Below are positions 5,950 through 55,998 of a DNA stretch of 64,000 nucleotides, one piece after another. Location of the stretch: positions 235,966 to 299,965 of the forward strand of contig VRVR01000033.1 in assembly GCA_009859145.1 (NCBI GenBank), given 5' to 3'. The position numbers and the translations under genes are program-made. How positions within the stretch are numbered: the stretch's first letter is position 1; each line of letters begins with the position of its first letter. Source of the stretch: Andalucia godoyi And28 (taxonomy: Eukaryota > Protista > Jakobida). A model generated the notes under the pieces. The model was not told the DNA's origin, did no database searches, and saw only the letters and a program-made list of their open reading frames with translations.

Positions 5950-6222
5950 CGCGCACATGGTGTTTACAATGCACACTGTGAAAAAGATCCGGCGACCGAC
6001 CGACGGTCACCAAGCAAACCGTCGTACGGCACGCATACACAACCCCTGGCACGTCTGGATCGAGACTGGAGTAGTGCGCGCGACATCTGCTTTGAAGAAC
6101 GCTTGGGCGTATTCGAGCCTGCCCCCCATTTCTGTATTGAATTCACATCCCCGTTCGAATGCAAGACTGAGTATGGACAGGTCAGCAACGACTCGCCTTT
6201 TGCTTCGTGGACAACGTAGACA
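5950..6222 (+). mobile_element. Diverged Fanzor2/TnpB-derived non-autonomous element relic (subfamily R)
   Basis: 6055-6100 encodes LDRDWSSARDIC and aligns at DNA level with 44328-44373. TGCAAGACTGAGTATG at 6160 matches 44419. The end GTGGACAACGTAGACA matches GTGTACAATGTAGGCG (7844-7859) at 12/16. Left boundary uncertain. Confidence 0.6.
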
Positions 6223-6383
6223 TCTGCTGTAACATGAACCTCTCTTGCTTTGTGTTTTGTATTCTGCTGCTCAAAACCCTAACCCTAAGGCAGTCCTTTT
6301 TCTGTTTTCCTCAACAGGGAATTCCCGTGTTTCCTCTCTATTATATATGCAGTTTCCGCATGAGACAGAGAGAGAGAGAGAGA

Positions 6384-7612: not shown

Positions 7613-7859
7613 CACCGTTGCCGCTTATTGCGATATGATGAAGCCATCTGAAGCGCACCAAAACAGGAACACTGCCATGCGCCATGCGTCTGTTATCTTA
7701 GCAACTCCGTCATACGATGCCCGATTCGTTTCGCCCCATTTTGATCATGAAATCCCTATGTAAATACGCCACCGCGTTGCATTGTGCATGTTGCTGGGTT
7801 GCAGCATTGATTATGGGTGATCGGCGATGATTATCCGTGGTTAGTGTACAATGTAGGCG
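7613..7859 (+). mobile_element. Repeat family A copy 1: short non-autonomous element with a Fanzor-type right end
   Basis: Near-identical inverted copy at 55194-55449; its last ~60 nt are homologous to the right end of the family B elements. Confidence 0.75.
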
Positions 7860-12668: not shown

Positions 12669-13096
12669 CGCCTGCATCACACACTGAACATGACGAATAG
12701 ACATGCATATTCAATTTTGCATGGAAGGGGATAGGCCCCAACACGCCTCACAGCGCTCTTCAGATAAATGTTCCGCGCTCCGTTTCCCAATCTCGATCAA
12801 TCGGTGAGCCACCTTCTCAGCGTGACACGTTGTTTCTGAGAAGGGTGCATTTTTTTGATTCCGACGGCCCTAGCAGCAGGCGCTTTCGTGTCCTCAGTTG
12901 CAGCGATTGATGCAACTGGAGCTACGAGAGGAAGAGGCGGTAGGCGTAGTGACACGTGGTCTCTTAGGAGGTCTGCGGGACCTAGGAGGCCCTGTATCAC
13001 GAATTCCTGTGAAACAAGCGTGCTAGTGTCGGCCAGTATTGACCGTGTCTGTTTATGTACACTTCCTTCCGTATGCATGACAATGACGTGTTATTA
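12669..13096 (-). mobile_element. Repeat family B copy 1: internally deleted Fanzor2 (IS607/TnpB-like) element
   Basis: Inverted homologue of 43891-44480. Encodes ARAVGIKKMHPSQKQRVTLRRWL joined to DRDW(+2 nt)NGARNIYLK. Right end ...GATGCAGGCG at 12669. A 12-bp direct repeat TTATTAGTCATC lies at 12658-12669 and 13091-13102. Confidence 0.8.
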
Positions 13097-13605
13097 GTCA
13101 TCAGCTGAGCTGTCACCAAAGACAGATCCAAGCCACATGTTTTTATTATAGTTGGGGAGGACATCACCAATTCCATGCAGTCAAAAGGATCATCGCAACC
13201 GGCATATTTCCCATACGATTCAACATTCAAAAATTGAAATGTTGAAATGTTGGAGGAAACAGAATGTGGCCGGCGGCGCTGCACATCGCATCCGCAATTC
13301 TCACGTGCGCATCGTGTGGCTGATTTTCAATACGGTGTGACACATCGATCACATCCTCGTGATATGATCATCCGCAGTTTGATCAACAAGGTGCGGCGAG
13401 AGGGAATCAACCGGTTTCTTGGTTCTCGGTATCCTCGGGCATGGTCGGTTTGCGTTTGCAGAGAAGATTCCTCTCTGGAGCCGTGGGTGTTTTGTCCCTT
13501 GATGAAAGGTGCCGCTGGAGGGTTCGATTACAAAAGACAAAGCAAACAGAAGGAACAACAGAGAGAGAACGAAAAGTGGACTTGACTACGGTAAGACAAT
13601 CGCGT
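13097..13605. repeat. Repeat family C copy 1 (unclassified ~500-bp dispersed repeat)
   Basis: Direct, largely near-identical copy at 55499-55998; internal palindrome TTCAACATTCAAAAATTGAAATGTTGAA at 13219-13246. Confidence 0.85.
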
Positions 13606-35058: not shown

Positions 35059-35482
35059 TTTTATTAATCTCCTGCTCGGCTAGCCGCGGCTCAACAAGAT
35101 GACGGAGAGAGAATAAGACGAAAACGTCAATGCCAGCGAAGAAGTTTTTGCTTTTCGATTCAGAAACTTTTTTAGATATGCAGTTCGCTCTCTGGCATCA
35201 AGGCACGCTGCATCAAATCCTCAGTTTCGGAACCCGAAGAACGAATGCTCTGGCTTCTGACCATTCCCCCCCGCTTCAAAACGACTTGGGAGGGGTTCTT
35301 CCTCTGTTGTTATTTTATTTTTTAATGGTGTTACTTACTAATTTTATTATCATTTTATAATTATAGTTATCATTTCATATTTACATTTGTAGCTGTTATT
35401 TTTTTGCGTGTACTACCGCTTCAATTTTTCCAATAGTGTTTTTCTCCCGTTTTCCCTTTCTTCTCTCTCCATCGAAAGACAA

Positions 35483-38400
35483 ATGTCAGGAAGGCCGGCG
35501 TCTGCGGTTTCGTCGCGGTCGGATGCTCCGATCGTCCCGTCTGCGGACGTATCGTTTGGCGAGCCTTCGCGATCCATGTTTGCTCTGGGTTCGGTGTTTC
35601 TCGACGAGACGTCGCACATCAATTTCGTTCCTGGAGAGCCTCTCAAGCCCCACATCACCAAGCTTGTGAATTGCATCTATGATGGAGACCTCGCGTCGCA
35701 GCGAGATTCGCTGTTTCTGATTGGTAAGGCCATTTCGCAGCCGTCTGCTGCGGAGAATGCAGATGTTGTCAATGTTCTAAAATCCATGGGGATTTGCGAG
35801 CCTGTTCTGCAGTGTCTAGAGAGCGATGCATCGTCGGATCTGCGAAGAGCCTCCCTGCGTCTGCTTTGCAATCTGTCCTCGGCTGATGACTCCGTCTCTG
35901 TGGAGATTCGACAGTTGGGCGGGTTGTCGCGCGTGTTGGACTGTCTGGTCCCGGATCCCGAACTCGAATCGTTGGAGACAGTAAGAGCGGCTTTAAGAAC
36001 AATCTGCAACCTGTCGATTAATGATCAAAACAAGGTCGAGATCCGGCTGCTTGGAGGACTGCCGAAGCTGGTGTCAGCACTCGAGCTGGAAGACTCGCGG
36101 ACGAAGCTGGATGCTCTTCGCGCTGTATGCAATCTTTCGATTGATCCGTCGAATCGTGTAGCTCTCGGGATTCTTGGAGTCTGTCCATTCGTGATCAACG
36201 CGCTGCAAGAACACATTGATGACGAAGAATGTACCCGCTATTCTCTTGCTGCTCTGATCAACCTGTCTTCTGATTCCGTTAATGCCTCGCAGTTCATCCC
36301 TGCGGTTCCAGTCCTGGCCGACATCTTGCTCAACCCACGGTCGAATGGCATCCTCTTGTTTGCGACTCGAGCGCTGTGCACGCTTGCGTATGCTCTTCCG
36401 CTGGATGCTTCTGTGGTGGATGCTTCTGGGCATGTAATGGATTCCTGCGCTCTCTTTGAACCATGCTATGTCCCATTGCTGGGGCTGTCGAAACCAAGGG
36501 AGTCCACTGCGGATGACATTGCTTGCTACGCACTTACCACTGTGACCGCCCTGGTTCGCAATCCTGCGATTGCACATCGCCTCTGGAATGCCTTTGGGCT
36601 GCCGGACATTATTCTCTCGCAGCTTGGGTCCAAGAACACAGAGATTCGAAGATACGCGATTTCATTGACAACGGCCGTGTCTTGCTTGTATTCCGAATTC
36701 CTTTCAGACTTGGATTGCAGAGATTCAAAAATGCTGGCCGTGATGGCAAAGAATGTGCTCTCCAGAGACAGCAAGACCAAAAGAGCCGTTTTGCAATGCC
36801 TGCGTGCGTTTGCTGTATCCGTCGATAAGGTCAGGGTGTGCAGAGTGCTGAATGATTTGGGGGCATTTCGTGTTTTGGTGGATATCGCAGGCTCCGAGGC
36901 TCGACTGCCCGTTTCAGAGGAGACGCATGACGGTTTTGTTCCATCCTTACAAGATACATGGTCGTACTTAATTCCCGTAGCGTCTTTGCAGCTTTTAGCA
37001 ATTGCGTATGACTCGGAAAGCGTGTCGGCGTCGTCTCTGCCTCCAGCGATTCTTTCTCTCGTGGAGCAGCCGGATCAGATTGCCGCTATTGTTGCCAGGG
37101 AAACCGAAAGAGTCAATGATTTTGTTCTTCAGAAGCGTGGCCAACTGGAGGATATGCGGAAGAGTGTTCGGCAGTCGGCCCCCTTGGGTGTTGCAACGCC
37201 GGGGCAATCCAAAAAGGCTACGTATGCCGAACTGGAAGCCGAAAATTACCGGCTGCGTACCCAGCTGTCTGAATGCTCCGCAGCCGGCACTACCCGTGTC
37301 GACGATCTCGATATGACGCCACAGGAACTACGGGAATATGTGAGTGAGCTCGAATTGCGGAATCGCGCGCTGATTCGTCAAGCAGAGAGCTGGGCGGCCT
37401 TCAAGTCGGAACTGGAGAGTGCGCGATCACGTTCATTAACTGATCATCCCGATTCGAGGAACAGCGAAATCTCAATGTTGCAGAGCCAAATCAAACAGTT
37501 GGAAACAGATCTCGAGGATTCTGCCAGCAAGGAGCATTATGCAAATCAGAGAGTGGACGTTTTGGAGCGGGAGCTTGCGCAGGTCGTCGCAAGTCATGCT
37601 TCCAGTAATACGGTCGATGGGTCGCGTCATTTATCGAGCGAATCGTCTTCGCAGACTGCTGCACTTTCAGCAAGTTCTAATGGATATCCGTCGACGGAGG
37701 TGCTTAAACTGGAAGCGGAGAATGCAGACCTGGCACGGAGGATCGTGGAGTACGACGAACGGGTGCTCCTTCTTGAGAGTGAAATCGAGCGACACCGGTC
37801 TGTAGTGTCGAATGAAATTGTTCCAGGAGAGGCTCCCAGATCAGATGTCACTGACACGCCCGCATCTGCTGCGTCGTCTCATATGTTGGTGAGTTCCCAA
37901 TCGTCACAGGACGCGGAGGCCGAAATTCGACGCCTGCGTTTGGAACTCGATCGTGTTCGATCTATGCGTTCTGCGGAGTCTGTGGCCGCACACGAGAAAA
38001 TTTCGACTCTCGAACGCGAATTGTCACTCGCATTTGCACAGCCCGGACCAGCTGCTGTGGCGCCGGCTTCCGAGCCCTTGAAGCCGAATGTGTCGCATTC
38101 GAGTGCGCAGACACCATCGACACAGGCGCATGAACGTACCCTCGTTAGAGATCACTCCGAAACACTGGTCGACGCACATGCTCGTATCCAGTCGCTGGAG
38201 ACGGAGCTGCAGTCACAATCGCTTTTCTACGACAGTCAGAGGCTGAAAATGGAGAATACAATTACAACTTTGCAGGCCGAATTGCAGTTGGCACAGGCTC
38301 CTGAACAGGCTGTTTCGTCGGAGCCTCCATTGGCTGCGGTAGTTCCATTGCCTCAATCAGGTCACTCTTTCGAGGATACAGTCCGATCTCTTGAGAAAGA

Positions 38401-41400
38401 GCTTAGTCTGCAGATGGAAGCGTTTCTTGCGGAAAAGCGCGCATGGAAAGAGGAAGAGAAGGGTTTCGAAAGTCAAATTGAAGAACTGCAAGGACGTCTT
38501 TTTGCACTCGAAAGCCGGTGGCGAGGAGAGTTCCTCCAGGAGCACGAGAAAGTCGGGGAATTCGGGTCCACAGTTCTCGGATTGAGAGAAGAGCTCAAAG
38601 CGGCGGGGGATAAGATCTCTTCCTTGGAATTTGAGATTTCTCGTCTGACGGCGCATTTTTCAGAATTGCTGGCGTCGAAAGATGCAGAAATCGCAGCAAT
38701 TTCCAAGGAGACTAGTGCAGTTGCAGCTGCAGCTGCCGTTGCACCCGTTGTGCAGAGAGTGGTCGCTCAACAAGCAGATCAACGGAAGAGTGTGGATCTT
38801 CGAGAGGCCGAGCGGAAAATCGAGGAATTGCGTTCCGAACTGGAGGCATATCAACATGCAGATGACGCCACTCGGCGATCTCTGCTGATCTCAATGAAGG
38901 GAAAGGAAGACTTTGTATCTGCAATTGCGCCGATTGTGGAAGATATTCGATCATTTTTATGCATGCACGAGGAAGAGCCTGTGCAGTTCGTTCTTGTGTC
39001 AGCGAGATCCTCTCTTGCTTCTCAGCGAGAAATGATTGGTGACCTCAAACGGGAATTGGAATCTGTCGTTTTGCAGAGAAATGCAATCGAGGAGAAAGTT
39101 CTTTTGTTGGAACGGGAGCTGAAGAACCAGATTCGTTTCACCGATGACAACAGCAATTCTTTGAAGGCGCGCATCGAGGATCTTGAGCAGCAGTACAAGG
39201 CCGCGACTGCGGATGCGCGCTCTGTGGTGCTTAGGGAGATGCAATCCCAATTAGATGACCTGGAGTCGGATCGCCATTCCTTGGAATTGAGAAAGGAGGA
39301 AATCGTGGGCGATCTTAAACGGAGCAATGCAGAGCGAGAGCGGTTGGCACAACTTCTCAACTCGGAGCGGGATCTCCGCCAAGCCGCAGAAGAAAGAGTT
39401 CAGTTGTTGGATCGCGAATGGGGCCTGCAGCGCGAGACGTACGAAAAGCAGCTGCGAGCCCAGCACTCTAAACAAACCAACCATGTCGAGGGGAGAATGC
39501 ATCATGCGCAGCCTGCGCAGCCTGCGCTAACTGTGCAGCATGCGCAAGTGCAGACGGAGATGGATGATAGTGCGATACGCGAGTCGGCATATGTGGACCG
39601 GATTAAGATGCTTCAGGACGAACTTGACAAGCAATCATCTCACTTTTCTCGCAGCCACCATGATCATGTTCGTGAATTGCAAGCACAAATCGCTTCTCTG
39701 CAAGCATCTGTACCCGCTGTGCCTACGCCGGAATCCGAAACTGTGGTTAAAGAAGATGGGTCTTCTCCGTCTTCTTCCGCATCTTCCCGTGAGGAATTGG
39801 TGGATGCACGACGACTGACAGAGAAACTGAAGCTTGATGTTTCTGTGTTTCTTGCCAGCTCAGTGGATGATCTTGCCGTGCGGAAGAATGTGCGCTCTTT
39901 GATGGAAGGAGTGTCGAAAGATCCGAGCATCACTGGTGTGTGCAGGTCTTGTGGAGTTCCGCGCATTTTGTTCGATTTACTGTCATTGAAAGATGGCCGC
40001 TTGTCTGCCGAGTCTCGCAGGTTTTTATGCCAGTTGATGTCTTCTCTCATGGCAAAGGAAGCGAATCGCGATGCAACACTCGCGTCTGTCATGGATATTG
40101 TCTCGGTTGCGCCTTCCTTGACGACTCCCACGTCTTGTGTTCTAGCATCCGTTTCGGCTTCCAGTTTGTTCTTGCACGTTCTGCATGTGCTTCTGGATCT
40201 GATTTCATCCGCAGATTTGTCACTGGTGTCCCATGGATTGTCGGTATTCCGCATGCTGGTCTCCCATGAAGACAGTGCCAAGCGATTGCTGGAACTGCCG
40301 GTGGAACGGGAGAAGTGCTTCCGCCGCCTTGTGGATCTGGTTTCAAACCCGCTTGATGACATTACCCGCCGAAATGCGGTGAGATCCATCAAATCCTTGG
40401 CGTCATCTGCTTGGTCGTCGGAGCAAAAGACACTGCTGCGAAACGGGGATTTGATTGCTGCTCTCTTGCAATGCATCCGAACGACGAATGCAAAGTCAGA
40501 GATGGCCGAGGACCTTGTCCGCCAGTCCATGCGAGCACTCATGATTATGTGTGTTATTCCAGAAGTCAGAGTCGAAATTCGAATGCAGAATGGGATTTCT
40601 CCCATTGTTGCGTTGCTGGATGCGAGGACATCATCCCCAGAAACCAGGAAAGCAGCTGCGGGAGCCTTGATCAATTTGTCTGTCAATGGCAAAAACAAGG
40701 AAGAGATCCGCGCTTGCCACGGAGTTCCGTTGCTGATTAAGCTGACTCAACGAATCGGATTGTCCTCTGTTCAGATACTCGACAAGGAGGAAAAGCTGGA
40801 TGCAGAGGGCCGGTCGACGTTTTCCTTTGGTCTTGAGGGACCAGAGGATCACGCCGAGGAAGACCAGGAGACGAGACGTTTTTCAATTCGAACGATCTCG
40901 AATCTGGTGTTGAATGATGCTGCTTGCGAGGAAGCAGTAGATCGCGGTCTGATACCTGCTCTCGCGCGGAACATAGCGCTAGGGGACGGCATATCGACGC
41001 GGTTTGCGTTAAGGAGTCTTGTGCACATTGCGAGTTCGGACCGGGTAGCAGGACGACTCGTGGAGGTCTTTTCTAGTTCTCGACCATTGCTGCGTTTTGT
41101 TGTTGCAACTGTTGGTCACAAGGATCTTGAAGTGGCCACCGAGTGTGTTCGTTTGCTCCACCGTCTTATGCTTCGTGAGAACATGTCCAAGTTTGGTCGA
41201 TTGCTTTCTATGACGTGTGTCCACATGGGGGTGCCCTCCCGATTCTGTAAGCTGCTGTCATTTCCGTTCGGTTCTCCTGAAAGATGCGCAATTCGGTGTG
41301 TCATTCCCGACATGCTGGAACTGTGCCTGGAAATGGCAGTACTCTCGGAGGAGTCCCGTGCCCAGTTTGTGAAACATGGACTCATCAAGTTCCTTGTTGA

Positions 41401-43807
41401 GGCTGTTCTGTTGCGGCCATTGCCTGTCCGTGGATCCGAGGATGTCTTTGATTTCTTCGCTGGCGAACCGGTTTCGGCGGCACTAGTTGACCAGTTTGAC
41501 ACGGATGGTTTGGAGTACTTGCCTCCCATGGAGTCGCCTGCATTCTGGAATTCTGTCTTCCTTCCCACGTTTTCATCTACTGTGGATATGGTTTGCTGGA
41601 TGAGTAATCAGTATCCTTTACGAAGAAGCGCTCTTCGACTGCTGTTTTTGCTGCTCTCCATGGAGGAGGGCAGGGTGGTTTTCAAGGGTCTTCCGCTTTC
41701 GACGAAGAGCCTTGTTCGGGTGATCCGTGAGTTCAATGCGCTTGTTCAGGTGGCTACCAGTAAGCGCCCGTCTGCGAGTGTTCCGTACCTGTCATTTGCC
41801 AATGTGCTCAGTAGTTTTCAGGAGTTGTCCGCCGGCTCTCCGATTGCAGAGTCCTTGACGGACGCATTCGATCATCCTGTAGTTACTGCAATTGATGCGA
41901 TACGCGTTCTGGTCCAAGCGTGCACGTTGGAGTCTATCATTTCAAGTTTTTCGCAGCAACTGTCACCATCTGATTGGCAGTCGCTCGTGGGGGCTCTTAC
42001 TGTATCCCGGGTGCACAACGAGCATGCACTGACACGTTCTGTGTTGCGACTCATGCACATGCTGACGGCGGAGGACAAGAACGAATCGGAGCTGTTTACG
42101 GACGGGTCTTCGCTTTGGGATGTGCTGGTTGAGATATCTGGATTTGACAGCAGCAGCGCAGCCAGTGCGCCGTCTCGCTCTGCGACGTCGTCTGAGAACC
42201 ACGAGATCTTTGATTCGCGCAATTACACGTCAGCAGTGGACGACGTCGAGTTGCAGCGTCTCGGAATGGGCATCTTATGCAACGTTTCTGTCAAGGATGA
42301 GCACAAGGCGATGCTTGGCTTGGATCATTCGGGCATCAAAATGATTTTGTCTGTCATCCAGTCGAACGGCGATAAAAAGGTTGTCCGAGACGGTTTACGT
42401 GTGCTGCGCAATCTGTCGTATGACAGCGAGTGCCGCAAGGAGATTAACAGTCGTGGTGTGCCGCTGCATGTTTGCCGATTGTTGTGCGGCATCATTCTTC
42501 CAGTCCTCCAGTCGTCGTCTCCTGGGTCTTCCGTTTTCACTTCTCGAGACTCGGATGATTCTCTTTCCGTGCGGTTTGCCGTCCGAATACTCTGCATTCT
42601 GTCCATGGACCAGGACAACCGTGTTTTGATTGTCGACGATCGGGACTGTCTGGCGTGTGTTATTGCCGTCCTTGGCAGATCTGCAGATTTCGAAGCTCGG
42701 CGAGCATCGGCCGGCGCGCTGATTAATCTGTCCGTTCACAAGAATCACAAGCCGAAGGTGAGGGCAGCAGGAGCGGTCCCTGTACTTGTTCAGAGCTTGG
42801 AGCCAAATATTGCCGGGGAGTTTGCTTCGTTTGACGCTGAGTCTGCCAAGTACTCGCTTAGGGCGCTGTACAATTTGAGCATTCGAGATGACGTGAAGGC
42901 TGATCTCGTGACTCTTGGTGCATCTGTTCTTCTTCTCGATTGCATGCGAACGTCTCTTCGAAAGCGCCCATCCGAAGTCTCCCCATGGGATGCAGACTCT
43001 AGATTCTTCGCGGTGTCGATTCTCCTTCATTTGTCTCAGATTGCCGGAGGCCGTCAAGACATTCGAAAGCGCGGCGGAATCCACGATCTAGTGGATGGCG
43101 CAAACAAGGAAACGGATCGCCGAGTGAAGGCAACCATCTGGCAATGTTTGTTGAACCTTGCGAGCATGTCCTCCACGGAAGAGGTTTCACTGTCAGACGA
43201 GGGATCCTTGGGACACGTTCGGTCGTCCTCGTCGTTCAGTTCTCTCAATTCGCTGTCTTCTCTGCTCAATCTGAATGTCCGGCCGTCTCCGGATCTTGCG
43301 CAATGCCATGCACAAATTCGGTCGGCGGGAGGGCTGTTGCTCATTCGGTTTACTCTGGCGCACTTTTTGTTCAACATTTCTGTCGCTGTCGGATGCCCTG
43401 CGAACCAAGCACGATCGTCTATCTTGCACAGCGTTCCTTCTCTCGGGGGTACAACATATGATGTTCTGATCCAAGACAAGGAGTCATGGGAGGTGTTTTT
43501 CATGGCGACAAGACTGCTCAAACTGTTAGCGTACGACGCACGATTTGAGTTGCGCGATCTGGGCTGCCTTCCGCTTATTGTCGAGTTGTTCCGTATTCCT
43601 CAGGGTGCCGTGACGGATGCTTGCAGCAATACCTCACAGTCCCTCGTGCCGCTGCCTGCGGAACTACCCGTGAAGCGGTTGATGGACAGGATTGTGGACG
43701 AGCTGGAGCAAGATCCCAGCACACGAGCGGAATTGCAGCGCCTGCAGTCTGTTCCTCGCGTGGTGTCCATGACCGATCCCAAGGCTCCGAAGGGTAAGAA
43801 GGTCTAG
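35483..43807 (+). CDS. Giant (2774 aa) armadillo-repeat / coiled-coil / armadillo-repeat protein
   Basis: Single ORF; ARM motifs (AALRTICNLSINDQNKVEIRLLGGLPKLV; AAAGALINLSVNGKNKEEIRACHGVPLLI; ASAGALINLSVHKNHKPKVRAAGAVPVLV) flank a long heptad region. Confidence 0.85.
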   Translation: MSGRPASAVSSRSDAPIVPSADVSFGEPSRSMFALGSVFLDETSHINFVPGEPLKPHITKLVNCIYDGDLASQRDSLFLIGKAISQPSAAENADVVNVLKSMGICEPVLQCLESDASSDLRRASLRLLCNLSSADDSVSVEIRQLGGLSRVLDCLVPDPELESLETVRAALRTICNLSINDQNKVEIRLLGGLPKLVSALELEDSRTKLDALRAVCNLSIDPSNRVALGILGVCPFVINALQEHIDDEECTRYSLAALINLSSDSVNASQFIPAVPVLADILLNPRSNGILLFATRALCTLAYALPLDASVVDASGHVMDSCALFEPCYVPLLGLSKPRESTADDIACYALTTVTALVRNPAIAHRLWNAFGLPDIILSQLGSKNTEIRRYAISLTTAVSCLYSEFLSDLDCRDSKMLAVMAKNVLSRDSKTKRAVLQCLRAFAVSVDKVRVCRVLNDLGAFRVLVDIAGSEARLPVSEETHDGFVPSLQDTWSYLIPVASLQLLAIAYDSESVSASSLPPAILSLVEQPDQIAAIVARETERVNDFVLQKRGQLEDMRKSVRQSAPLGVATPGQSKKATYAELEAENYRLRTQLSECSAAGTTRVDDLDMTPQELREYVSELELRNRALIRQAESWAAFKSELESARSRSLTDHPDSRNSEISMLQSQIKQLETDLEDSASKEHYANQRVDVLERELAQVVASHASSNTVDGSRHLSSESSSQTAALSASSNGYPSTEVLKLEAENADLARRIVEYDERVLLLESEIERHRSVVSNEIVPGEAPRSDVTDTPASAASSHMLVSSQSSQDAEAEIRRLRLELDRVRSMRSAESVAAHEKISTLERELSLAFAQPGPAAVAPASEPLKPNVSHSSAQTPSTQAHERTLVRDHSETLVDAHARIQSLETELQSQSLFYDSQRLKMENTITTLQAELQLAQAPEQAVSSEPPLAAVVPLPQSGHSFEDTVRSLEKELSLQMEAFLAEKRAWKEEEKGFESQIEELQGRLFALESRWRGEFLQEHEKVGEFGSTVLGLREELKAAGDKISSLEFEISRLTAHFSELLASKDAEIAAISKETSAVAAAAAVAPVVQRVVAQQADQRKSVDLREAERKIEELRSELEAYQHADDATRRSLLISMKGKEDFVSAIAPIVEDIRSFLCMHEEEPVQFVLVSARSSLASQREMIGDLKRELESVVLQRNAIEEKVLLLERELKNQIRFTDDNSNSLKARIEDLEQQYKAATADARSVVLREMQSQLDDLESDRHSLELRKEEIVGDLKRSNAERERLAQLLNSERDLRQAAEERVQLLDREWGLQRETYEKQLRAQHSKQTNHVEGRMHHAQPAQPALTVQHAQVQTEMDDSAIRESAYVDRIKMLQDELDKQSSHFSRSHHDHVRELQAQIASLQASVPAVPTPESETVVKEDGSSPSSSASSREELVDARRLTEKLKLDVSVFLASSVDDLAVRKNVRSLMEGVSKDPSITGVCRSCGVPRILFDLLSLKDGRLSAESRRFLCQLMSSLMAKEANRDATLASVMDIVSVAPSLTTPTSCVLASVSASSLFLHVLHVLLDLISSADLSLVSHGLSVFRMLVSHEDSAKRLLELPVEREKCFRRLVDLVSNPLDDITRRNAVRSIKSLASSAWSSEQKTLLRNGDLIAALLQCIRTTNAKSEMAEDLVRQSMRALMIMCVIPEVRVEIRMQNGISPIVALLDARTSSPETRKAAAGALINLSVNGKNKEEIRACHGVPLLIKLTQRIGLSSVQILDKEEKLDAEGRSTFSFGLEGPEDHAEEDQETRRFSIRTISNLVLNDAACEEAVDRGLIPALARNIALGDGISTRFALRSLVHIASSDRVAGRLVEVFSSSRPLLRFVVATVGHKDLEVATECVRLLHRLMLRENMSKFGRLLSMTCVHMGVPSRFCKLLSFPFGSPERCAIRCVIPDMLELCLEMAVLSEESRAQFVKHGLIKFLVEAVLLRPLPVRGSEDVFDFFAGEPVSAALVDQFDTDGLEYLPPMESPAFWNSVFLPTFSSTVDMVCWMSNQYPLRRSALRLLFLLLSMEEGRVVFKGLPLSTKSLVRVIREFNALVQVATSKRPSASVPYLSFANVLSSFQELSAGSPIAESLTDAFDHPVVTAIDAIRVLVQACTLESIISSFSQQLSPSDWQSLVGALTVSRVHNEHALTRSVLRLMHMLTAEDKNESELFTDGSSLWDVLVEISGFDSSSAASAPSRSATSSENHEIFDSRNYTSAVDDVELQRLGMGILCNVSVKDEHKAMLGLDHSGIKMILSVIQSNGDKKVVRDGLRVLRNLSYDSECRKEINSRGVPLHVCRLLCGIILPVLQSSSPGSSVFTSRDSDDSLSVRFAVRILCILSMDQDNRVLIVDDRDCLACVIAVLGRSADFEARRASAGALINLSVHKNHKPKVRAAGAVPVLVQSLEPNIAGEFASFDAESAKYSLRALYNLSIRDDVKADLVTLGASVLLLDCMRTSLRKRPSEVSPWDADSRFFAVSILLHLSQIAGGRQDIRKRGGIHDLVDGANKETDRRVKATIWQCLLNLASMSSTEEVSLSDEGSLGHVRSSSSFSSLNSLSSLLNLNVRPSPDLAQCHAQIRSAGGLLLIRFTLAHFLFNISVAVGCPANQARSSILHSVPSLGGTTYDVLIQDKESWEVFFMATRLLKLLAYDARFELRDLGCLPLIVELFRIPQGAVTDACSNTSQSLVPLPAELPVKRLMDRIVDELEQDPSTRAELQRLQSVPRVVSMTDPKAPKGKKV

Positions 43808-43890: not shown

Positions 43891-44480
43891 TAATAACACG
43901 TCATTGTCATGCATACGGAAGTACACATAAACAGACACGGTCAATATCGGCCGACACTAGCACGTTTGTTTCACAGGGAATTCGTGCTTACGCGTAGTCA
44001 TCTATTCTATCATTCGTTCAGCGCACTGCCAAGAGGCGAACTTCCAAGACACGATCTCCAATCCCCAGCACGCAGGGTAGCCAACCCCAAGCAGAAGCCT
44101 CAGGGACCGTCTCTTGCAGAACTCTTGGTTTTCTGCTACGATGCACCAGGCGCAGTCGCAGTCGCAGTCGCAAAACCCCACCGTCTTCCTACTGCCTCTT
44201 CCTCTCGTATCTCCAGGTGCATCAATCGCTGCAACTGAGGACACGAAAGTGCCTGCTGCAAGGGCCGTCAGAATCCAAATGCACCCTTCTCAGGAACAAC
44301 GTGTCACGCTGAGAAAGTGGCTCACCGATTGATCGAGATTGGGAACGGAGCGCGGAACATCTATCTGAAGAACGCCGAGAGTCGTGTTGGGGGGCCTATC
44401 CCCTTCGCGGCAACGGGATGCAAGACTGAATATGCATGTCTATTCGTATACATATGCATGTTCAGTGTATGATGCAGGCG
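43891..44480 (+). mobile_element. Repeat family B copy 2: internally deleted Fanzor2 (IS607/TnpB-like) element with predicted omegaRNA right end
   Basis: 44114-44332 encodes QNSWFSAT...ARAVRIQMHPSQEQRVTLRKWL; 44328-44373 encodes IDRDW(+1 nt)NGARNIYLKN; terminal stem-loop 44419-44476; ends ...GATGCAGGCG. Confidence 0.82.
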
Positions 44481-44622
44481 TAAAAAATGTTGTATGCCAT
44501 ATGTCCAGCGCCGATGCGTGCGGATACAAGACATCTTTCCCATTTTTTATCTGTGTTTTTTATTTTTTAATTTTTTATTATCATAAAAAAATCTTTAATT
44601 ATTATTCATCATGCACGGAGCT

Positions 44623-45063
44623 CTAGTATCTTTTCGGGGGTTTGCCCACTTCTGGTCGCGCAGTGTACGGGATGAAGGCAAGGAAGCGTGCTCTCTTGAT
44701 TGCCGTGGCTAGTTCTCTCTGCTTTTTGGAGACCACGCCCGACAATCTCTTCGGCATCAATTTTCCCGTTTCCGACACGAATTTCGACAGGAGCTTCACG
44801 TTCTTAAAGTCGATTTCTGGAGCGCCTTGTGCAGACAGTGGGCAAGAAAGATCTCGTTTCGGTTGGATGAACCGTTTCTTCGAGGTCTCTGGGTTAAGCT
44901 CATCAGGCTCATAAAACTGACCAGGATAAAATGGTCGAATTGCATTCAGTCGCTCTGGCTGCTCCGGTGTAAATCCCGTCGATGGGGTCCCAGAGGCAAA
45001 GCAGCGCAAGCCAGCAAATCCAACGGACCGGGTCGCAGAGCGGAGCACACCAGTCAATAGCAT
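44623..45063 (-). CDS. MRPS18: Mitochondrial ribosomal protein S18 (bS18m), nucleus-encoded
   Basis: Presequence; [50 protein letters not shown]. Confidence 0.92.
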
Positions 45064-45512
45064 GATGCGCAAACCAGTCCTTTACTCTATTACAGAGACA
45101 AGACAAGACGAAACAAAACAAAACAAAAACTGGATAGCCGAAGAAAAATAATAATCGTGAAAACGGGTGAGAACGATTTTAAAAGGAATGAAAGAGAAAC
45201 AAGAAGAGGGCGTTTCGTCGCCCTTTTCTGATCGTCTTGTGTCCAGTCTCAACTCTCAACCCAAAGAGCAGGATTTGTTTTTGGTTTTTTTTTTACGACC
45301 GGTTGAACTACAGAAGCTCGAGGAACTCGTCTTTCTTTCGAGACCAGACGAACACCTGTGATTTCCTGGAAATTTCCCATGTTGTGATTTCGTTCATTTT
45401 CATTCTTCTTTCTACTCCATAGAATAACTCTAATTGTTACGTAGGCATTGCTCCTGTTTGTCGATGCGTCTCTTTTATTTTATTTAAACTTTTTAATTCT
45501 ATTGGCAGCAGC

Positions 45513-55193: not shown

Positions 55194-55449
55194 CGCCTAC
55201 ATTGGACACTAACCACGGATAATCATCGCCGATCACCCATAATCAATGCTGCAACCCAGCAACATGCATAATGCAACGCGGTGGCGTATTTACATAGGGA
55301 TTTCATGATCAAAATGGGGCGAAACGAATCGGGCATCGTATGACGGAGTTGCTAAGATAACAGACGCATGGCGCATGGCGCGTGGCAGTGTTCCTGTTTT
55401 GGTGCGCTTCAGATGGCTTCATCATATCGAAAAAAGAGGCAGCGGTACC
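55194..55449 (-). mobile_element. Repeat family A copy 2
   Basis: Reverse complement of 7613-7859 with few substitutions and a 7-bp internal duplication; right end ...AATGTAGGCG at 55194. Confidence 0.75.
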
Positions 55450-55498: not shown

Positions 55499-55998
55499 TG
55501 AATCATCATTGATCATCGGCTCAGCTGTGATCGAGGACAGACCCAATCCATGTGCCTTTTGTTTTTACTCTACATCAAAGAGTCATCGCAGCCAACATAT
55601 TCCCCCCATACGATTCAACATTCAAAAATTGAAATGTTGAAATGTTGGAGGAAACAGAATGTGGCCGGCGGCGCTGCACATCGCATCCGCAATTCTCACG
55701 TGCGCATCGTGTGGCTGATTTTCAATACGGTGTGACACATCGATCACATCCTCGTGATATGATCATCCGCAGTTTGATCAACAAGGTGCGGCGAGAGGGA
55801 ATCAACCGGTTTCTTGGTTCTCGGTATCCTCGGGCATGGTCGGTTTGCGTTTGCAGAGAAGATTCCTCTCTGGAGCCATGGGTGTTTGTCCTTGATGAAA
55901 GGTGCCGCTTGAGGGTTCGATTACAAAAGACAAAACAAACAGAAGGAACATCAGAGAGAGAACGAAAAGTGGACTTGACTACGGTAAGAGAATCGCGT
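55499..55998. repeat. Repeat family C copy 2
   Basis: Direct copy of 13097-13605. Confidence 0.85.

Follow-up and report, generated by a model that had tools for sequence, protein, structure and literature searches.

Probable relics of an IS607-type Fanzor2 transposon, with a retained predicted guide-RNA module, in the nuclear genome of the jakobid Andalucia godoyi

A 64-kb stretch of the nuclear contig VRVR01000033.1 of the jakobid Andalucia godoyi (GCA_009859145.1; draft nuclear genome, PMC7050145), hereafter called the window, carries a 590-bp repeated element in which two short pieces of apparent coding sequence are abruptly joined. A preliminary description, made from the sequence and its open reading frames (ORFs), took it for an internally deleted transposon of Fanzor2, the eukaryotic counterpart of the RNA-guided nuclease TnpB. 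This raises the question of where the element came from, what it has kept and whether it still belongs to a working system. We consider it very probable that the element and its second copy are non-autonomous, decaying derivatives of an IS607-type Fanzor2 transposon in the A. godoyi nuclear genome.

The two copies, A (43891-44480, forward strand) and B (13096-12669, reverse strand), are repeats with unrelated flanks. By blastn they match at 89% identity over 104 bp (E=1e-33) and at 85.5% over 297 bp (E=4e-96), and coordinates, frames and alignments agree with the 590-bp element and the minus-strand copy with the same junction that were first described. In A, an N-terminal frame at 44114-44332 reads LQNSWFSATMHQ...ARAVRIQMHPSQEQRVTLRKWLTD and then stops at TGA (44330-44332). 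The codons ATT GAT CGA GAT TGG (IDRDW) lie at 44328-44342, one base out of that frame, and AAC GGA GCG CGG AAC ATC TAT CTG AAG (NGARNIYLK) begins at 44344. Between them is a surplus G at 44343, set in brackets by the preliminary description, which is a genuine one-base frameshift; read uncorrected, the sequence gives LIEIGNGARNIYLK. The frame after this G, NGARNIYLKNAESRVGGPIPFAATGCKTEYACLFVYICMFSV, stays open until TGA at 44470-44472, making three reading frames in total. In copy B the junction is identical to that of A (...GGTGGCTCACCGATTGATCGAGATTGGGAAACGG...), with two surplus bases where A has one, and the C-terminal frame of B likewise extends as far as the final TGA seen in A. The copies also differ past the left end, where B has about 55 bp and A about 210 bp (roughly 43987-44187), B being without the codons for SWFS. 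Within the N-terminal fragment the two are 82.6% identical in amino acids and about 92% identical in DNA over part of the region; within the region checked this divergence looks like unconstrained drift, which would suit neutral evolution.

We compared these fragments with a custom Fanzor profile of 499 positions, built from 89 of 120 fetched homologues of the Torulaspora delbrueckii Fanzor, using hmmsearch with filters off on all 2,172 stop-to-stop six-frame ORFs of the window. The N-terminal frame of A was the top match among all of these (E=9e-10, profile positions 58-131) and that of B was the second (E=0.087), while the C-terminal frames of B and A fell within the best eight. When the peptide of A was joined by removing one base it matched in two collinear pieces, 60-131 and 468-486 of 499, with E=3e-14. 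The similarity of A and B to one another (mutual match E about 1e-96) and of their peptides to the Fanzor2 profile thus exceeds chance. The first piece is the N-terminus remnant (44102-44323, forward strand), which runs from the NSWFS of the N-terminal extension through the WED start ARAVRIQMHPSQEQRVTLRKWL; in it the WED/HTH (helix-turn-helix) pattern K-I-R-x-Y-P-x-x-x-Q-x-x-x-L-x-x-W is represented by AVRIQMHPSQEQRVTLRKWL at profile positions 112-131. The second piece, at 44328-44370 on the same strand, is the RuvC-III motif IDRDW(+1 base)NGARNIYLK, which on its own matches positions 468-486 at E=5e-5 and can be read only when one base is removed in A and two in B. The preliminary description had named both motifs, and the profile places them as it proposed. 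By BLASTP the N-terminal fragment of A matched the T. delbrueckii Fanzor at 1e-5 and NlovFz2 at 6e-6, both taken from Supplementary Table 5 of Saito et al. 2023 (PMC10432273), which gives Fanzor proteins with their omegaRNAs; the former contains ...NSDSWFSVIKHPQ...RARKIRIYPTNSQKETLKKWFG and the latter ...GWFNFS...KIRLYPNEQERTTLNQWMG.

Between the two pieces about 336 profile positions are absent, corresponding to about 960 bp in the relative at locus L002 (introduced below), and the deletion junction occupies 44324-44332, including the TGA at 44330-44332. The lost region comprises REC, RuvC-I, RuvC-II and the zinc finger: the RuvC-I Asp, the RuvC-II Glu and the C4 zinc finger (D...[TS][TS]xx[C4]...RD) belong to profile positions 132-467, which have no counterpart in A or B. 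The nuclease core is therefore gone, as had been supposed, and what A and B carry is a gene relic and no Fanzor2 gene.

The relic family is Fanzor2-type and not Fanzor1, because the same profile scores NlovFz2 (3.5e-120) far above SpuFz1 (0.05), with MmeFz2 (4e-34) and BaFz2 (1e-32) in between, and because the best solved structure for a 20-sequence family alignment was the mimivirus protein L79 (ApmFz2, 9b0l; E=2e-63), bacterial TnpBs following at about 1e-18. In these tests the Torulaspora protein groups with Fanzor2, though it is labelled 'Fanzor1' in the table of Saito et al. (PMC10432273). The SWFS of A had rightly been likened to the Fanzor2 N-terminal extension: NSWFS at 44120-44134 aligns with 'nsWfs' in the profile, and that profile position in turn aligns with N82-S83-W84-Y85 of ApmFz2. 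In the ApmFz2 structure residues 65-91 form part of a Fanzor2-specific RuvC-R subdomain, and N82 and S83 contact the omegaRNA pseudoknot (PMC11832414).

The closest full-length relatives indicate which kind of transposon this was. The best single matches of the joined peptide were P0020 (7.5e-10), P0022 and P0017. At each of their loci a TnpA that combines a MerR-HTH with a serine recombinase (YARVSS...KDRLCRFGFEL...VELVVLNQ) can be read from an open frame, and this frame runs through the 5' part of the annotated Fanzor ORF out of register with it; at P0026 the gene calls list the resolvase separately. These four relatives (P0020, P0017, P0022 and P0026) are, from their gene content, IS607-type, in line with the serine-recombinase tnpA guessed at from the start. 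The metagenomic P0020 element (JGI Ga0654431_0000660, locus L002) resembles A and B at the N-terminus (...WNSWFSIKMEHSQTQT...), at the C-terminus (...DRDVNAARNIYLRATQRVVLGPSPG...) and in its 3' DNA, about 40-45% of the retained residues being identical; unlike them it is full length, with tnpA and a 607-codon ORF. At L002 6430-6480 the stretch that encodes VELVVLNQ of tnpA encodes WNSWFS of Fanzor one frame over, and overlapping coding is also seen in L003, L005 and L011. The called 'Fanzor' ORFs of 565-607 aa in the relatives traverse most of tnpA in the other frame.

A TnpA profile made from L002, L003 and L005 found nothing in the six frames of the window, its best match (E=4.8) lying outside A and B, and the 5' body of A (43987-44101, forward strand) holds no detectable coding remnant. 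We also considered whether the 5' parts of the two copies retain traces of tnpA (MHTEV...YRPTLARLF against MH..YISPxxL, and AELLVF against VELVVL) and rejected this, as neither the profile nor BLASTP was significant. If the ancestor of A and B had a tnpA, it would thus have been lost without a detectable trace.

The preliminary description further held that the 3' end of the ORF, where it overlaps the omegaRNA, had been retained, and the comparisons at this end bear this out in so far as the motifs can be recognised. With the 3' 183 nt of L002 as a DNA query (nhmmer), the top two places in the window were A (44332-44461, E=6.5e-4) and B (E=0.018), and A starts to resemble L002 at about 44328-44332, the position of the junction. 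The ancestral stop codon stands at an equal distance from the end in both (TATGATGCAGGCG in A, TATGATCTAGGTG in L002), and ...CATGTTCAGTGTATGATGCAGGCG forms the right end of A, ...CATGATGTTCATTTATGATCTAGGTG that of L002. Four NlovFz2 omegaRNAs recovered from ribonucleoproteins end in ...AAATAAAGGCG (AAAGGCG) and continue into locus-specific guides (PMC10432273). NlovFz2 and T. delbrueckii omegaRNAs used as nhmmer queries gave nothing significant in the window (E about 5 for NlovFz2). Judged by the 5' end of the NlovFz2 omegaRNA, the omegaRNA is predicted to start about 45 nt downstream of the deletion endpoint, and therefore the derivative would have retained the whole predicted guide-RNA module.

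In A the predicted omegaRNA scaffold (44372-44480, forward strand) is supported by its fold, by DNA similarity to L002, by a covarying helix and by a hairpin shared with a second family of elements. It contains a 5' pseudoknot strand, GGCCTAT (44393-44399), a long terminal hairpin (about 44419-44476) and a 3' pseudoknot strand, GCAGGC (44474-44479), the right end ...GGCG finishing at 44480. The flank that would act as a guide if an omegaRNA were made is TAAAAAATGTTGTATGCCAT (44481-44500, forward strand), by analogy with TnpB and Fanzor biology (PMC10432273). We examined the pseudoknot in seven independent loci, namely L002, L003, the Lipomyces locus L008, L011, L015, NlovFz2 and T. delbrueckii. 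In all seven the final bases of the right end have their complement in a motif (TTGRGGCCTAGCYCC) whose translation is often LGPSP, and the variable bases covary across loci (CCUAG/CUAGG, CCUAU/AUAGG, CCUUU/AAAGG and CCCGG/CCGGG). With A and B included, the helix GGCCUAG/CUAGGC has 90.7% of its cells paired, compared with 75.3% in shuffles, and four of its six pairs are changed on both sides; its covariation score is 0.43 and that of the shuffles 0.13, neither the observed paired fraction nor the covariation score being reached by any of 500 shuffles, and slid registers are only 30-52% paired. This putative helix matches the pseudoknot known from ApmFz2 (positions -4 to 0 with the 5' scaffold) and from TnpB, which Fanzor1 is without (PMC11832414). 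Both strands are correctly placed in A and B and would form the pairs G-C, C-G, C-G, U-A, A.C and U.G, with one mismatch and one G.U. The 109-nt scaffold of A folds with z=-4.95, none of 200 shuffles being as stable; that of B (z=-1.06) is no better than its shuffles.

The conserved TTGRGGCCTAGCYCC occurs both inside the ORF, where it codes for LGPSP, and past the stop codon, and it covaries with the 6-7 nt that close the right end. At L010 2560-2583 (Eremothecium sinecaudum) CTAGGCG comes immediately after the RuvC-III codons (...KYLGEVE*), which looks as if most of the omegaRNA region had been deleted there.

Are these complete transposon ends, and did the deleted form itself move? At the right, the boundary is sharp in four copies. 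A, B and two members of the second family, E (7614-7859, forward strand, ending in AATGTAGGCG) and D (55194-55446, reverse strand), all end in ATG(C/T)AGGCG with unrelated flanks. D and E, about 250 bp long and 95% identical to one another, have no coding remnant; over their last ~60 nt they share homology with the right ends of A and B, and the terminal hairpin and GGCG end are common to both families, with three compensatory pairs in the hairpin. A left-end-like sequence seen by eye upstream of D was unsupported by a left-end profile. At the left, TAATAA (43891-43896 in A, 13096-13091 in B) is followed by CACGTCATTG..., and the boundary is set only by the agreement of A and B from there onward. 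The left end of A (CACGTCATTGTCATGCATACGG..., 43897-43986, forward strand) is 89% identical to B 13090-12998, copy B proper occupying 12669-13090 on the reverse strand. TAATAA may be a target, a motif like the target-adjacent motif (TAM), or the first bases of the element. Neither terminal inverted repeats at the ends of A nor, beyond a possible TAA on both sides, a target-site duplication was found, which fits Fanzor2/IS607 elements. Exact-pattern scans for the left end in metagenomes and for the right end in viral contigs returned nothing. The earlier statement that both ends were kept thus stands for the right end, whose terminus is shared with the relatives; for the left end it rests on A and B agreeing with each other, because no counterpart is detectable in the relatives.

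The same boundaries bear on a different origin of the second copy, in which a host segment carrying one old relic was duplicated and the deleted element never moved. Such a duplication would be compatible with there being two copies only, with a further repeat (X, described below) lying beside B and with the lack of a consistent pattern of target-site duplications. Against it, similarity between A and B begins and ends sharply at the same bases (TAATAA followed by CACG..., and ...GGCG), the flanks are unrelated and the right boundary coincides with the right-end terminus of the relatives, and we regard a segmental duplication as very unlikely.

Several results do weigh against the transposon origin that we favour. 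The window holds no full-length or tnpA-bearing copy, and the deleted form is present in it twice, so that the amplification claimed for it means at least one copying event, which the junction shared by A and B does attest. A profile of the left end recovered only A and B in the window, and this end has no detectable counterpart in the relatives. An 11-bp direct repeat, ATGACTAATAA (13101-13091 and 12668-12658), stands on either side of B, with nothing similar at A; it counts as a difficulty because a serine recombinase should not make one. General searches with the fragments gave no significant match: Pfam gave PF07282 at E=0.086, below threshold, and no match to PF12323, NCBIfam gave nothing, and neither did phmmer against PDB sequences. 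For the joined peptide a word-indexed search among 5.8 billion protein clusters returned no match, an exhaustive comparison of an 83-aa ORF of the window with 1.84 billion representatives gave 0 matches at E<=1e-3, and neither protein collection searched records a protein with these termini.

Could the peptide motifs then be coincidental, in an unrelated element resembling a miniature inverted-repeat transposable element? They are short, the Pfam value and the empty single-sequence searches of PDB and the databases would be expected from such an element, and the sole match to the peptide pattern in metagenomes, locus L016, proved to be coincidental, a GC-rich bacterial-type ORF that contains TDIDRDWNGQR by chance. 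Coincidence would however have to produce two collinear profile matches in the right order at E=3e-14, with the N-terminal fragment first of 2,172 ORFs, and, independently, the DNA likeness to the 3' end of a full-length element, including the stop position, the pseudoknot motif and the GGCG terminus. We consider it extremely unlikely.

For the transposon origin we infer the following order of events. A Fanzor2/IS607-type element would formerly have been resident in the A. godoyi lineage, and one ancestral copy would have lost about 1 kb between the codons of ...LRKW(L/F) and those of xDRDxN. This deletion would have spared a left end, some 70 codons of the N-terminus and a terminal stretch of ~150 bp, which holds RuvC-III and the C-terminal tail as well as the omegaRNA scaffold and the right end; tnpA may have been lost separately from the core or simultaneously with it. 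The deleted form would then have been copied to at least one further site. Because it makes neither nuclease nor transposase, this movement would have needed proteins of a full-length element in trans, supplied either as the serine-recombinase TnpA or through repair of a Fanzor2-triggered break that copies the element. Later drift would account for the 11-15% divergence, the frameshifts (+1 in A, +2 in B), further deletions and the pseudoknot mismatch. We infer that both copies are now inactive: most likely they are inert DNA in intergenic spacers, dead non-autonomous relics, because their coding remnants are frameshifted.

The retention of the 3' module raises the alternative that A and B are live guide loci, whose omegaRNAs are transcribed and taken up by a working Fanzor2 with its gene at another place in the A. 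godoyi genome, perhaps on unassembled subtelomeric scaffolds, the elements being maintained or mobilised in the manner of ghost Spu-1 of Spizellomyces punctatus. Ghost Spu-1 comprises 134 loci that have no Fanzor ORF and keep the ends and the omegaRNA region, and its omegaRNAs work with SpuFz1 (PMC10432273). The omegaRNA module is indeed the best-preserved part of the copies, with the z=-4.95 of the A scaffold; the right-end hairpin and GGCG terminus are common to two families and four copies; and 283 bp beside B and D are 100% identical between the two loci, so that some repeat turnover has been recent. The genome paper, moreover, omitted from the main assembly several short subtelomeric scaffolds, mainly transposon- or viral-like (PMC7050145). 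Against live loci are the 11-15% divergence of A and B with several indels, the A.C mismatch in the pseudoknot of both copies and the z=-1.06 of the B fold, and no Fanzor2 protein with these termini was present in the protein collections searched. We therefore think it unlikely that the loci are live. That A. godoyi still runs Fanzor2, with an intact gene in the unassembled subtelomeric scaffolds and extra guides from at least two ghost families, seems to us similarly improbable; if it were true, jakobids would have a working RNA-guided nuclease and its targets could be read from the ghost flanks.

If A and B are relics of the kind we propose, how do they compare with known systems? Like ghost Spu-1, they retain transposon ends and the omegaRNA region in the absence of the nuclease ORF, and two families of such loci in the window, A/B and D/E, share the right-end module. 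Ghost Spu-1, however, is Fanzor1, has 30-nt inverted repeats and coexists with 19 full-length genes (PMC10432273), whereas A and B are Fanzor2-type, lack inverted repeats, still show recognisable stubs of the ORF to either side of the deletion and have no known full-length partner. Fanzor2 is known from IS607-type elements through ApmFz2, the mimivirus L79 protein of ISvMimi (Bao & Jurka 2013, PMC3627910; structure 9b0l, PMC11832414). With ApmFz2 the copies have in common NSW(F/Y) in the N-terminal extension, the WED start KIRxYPxxxQxxxLxxW, the RuvC-III motif DRDxNxAxNI, the lack of terminal inverted repeats and a predicted omegaRNA pseudoknot that employs the last bases before the guide. Unlike it they have lost the core (REC, RuvC-I, RuvC-II and zinc finger) and any tnpA, their remnants are frameshifted, and their host is a jakobid instead of a giant virus or an amoeba. 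The host of NlovFz2, Naegleria lovaniensis (Saito et al. 2023, PMC10432273), also belongs to Discoba. Its omegaRNA has GTTGGGTCCTTTCCCC and ends in AAAGGCG before the guide, which is paralleled in A by GTTGGGGGGCCTATCCCC ... GCAGGCG. The NlovFz2 loci are undamaged, and their activity, with CCG as TAM, has been shown both in vitro and in human cells (PMC10432273); A and B sit after TAATAA and cannot encode a nuclease.

Fanzors have been reported from thousands of eukaryotic and viral assemblies, and the kind of element described here was already known from the Fanzor1 ghosts in Spizellomyces and from Fanzor2 in Naegleria; new is the host group. Andalucia is unmentioned in the Fanzor literature that we searched, which included the supplements of two papers, those of Saito et al. 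in part. Jakobida, a deep-branching group with bacteria-like mitochondrial genomes, would thereby join the hosts that carried Fanzor2/IS607 elements, and Fanzor2, like Fanzor1 in Spizellomyces, would leave derivatives that retain the guide-RNA module. The GGCCUAG/CUAGGC(G) pair together with the terminal GGCG would mark the right end and omegaRNA pseudoknot in distant Fanzor2 loci and may help in finding other ghosts and in fixing where right ends lie. For annotation, sequences like A and B are better masked as transposon relics than called as small ORFs.

The genomic setting is that of a eukaryotic nuclear contig: the window has a G+C content of about 50%, abundant microsatellites, long intron-poor ORFs and short spacers. 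We found no tRNAs in it, and no Rfam family reached its gathering score, E-value mode giving noise only. Copy A begins 84 bp beyond the stop of a 2,799-codon open frame (35408-43807, forward strand) and ends 143 bp from the stop of the gene for mS18, the mitochondrial ribosomal protein S18 (44623-45072, reverse strand), and could belong to the 3' untranslated region of a transcript of the 2,799-codon ORF. Copies A, B, D and E and a further relic, C, are every one located in intergenic spacers.

Relic C (6046-6177, forward strand) is an older remnant of a 3' end, diverged but still reading LDRDWSSARDI... in frame (tblastn E=0.003). Its local DNA alignment with A scores 34, compared with 18 +/- 2.2 in shuffles, none of 300 being as high. 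C may or may not have the same junction as A and B, the part before the junction being no more similar than shuffles. Repeat X, of 424 bp, occurs at 13184-13605 and 55577-55998; its copies are 96.5% identical, the 283 bp mentioned above being the part at 100%, and lie 5' of ghost elements B (by 84 bp) and D (by 130 bp), oriented as these are. X could be a further relic of more recent date or the partner in a composite, and a 46-codon ORF within it bears a weak likeness to the Fanzor2 RuvC-II helix (profile positions 356-386, E=0.15). Telomere-like repeats (CCCTAA twice, or degenerate) stand at about 6277-6292, about 13620 and about 56010, beside relic C and both copies of X.

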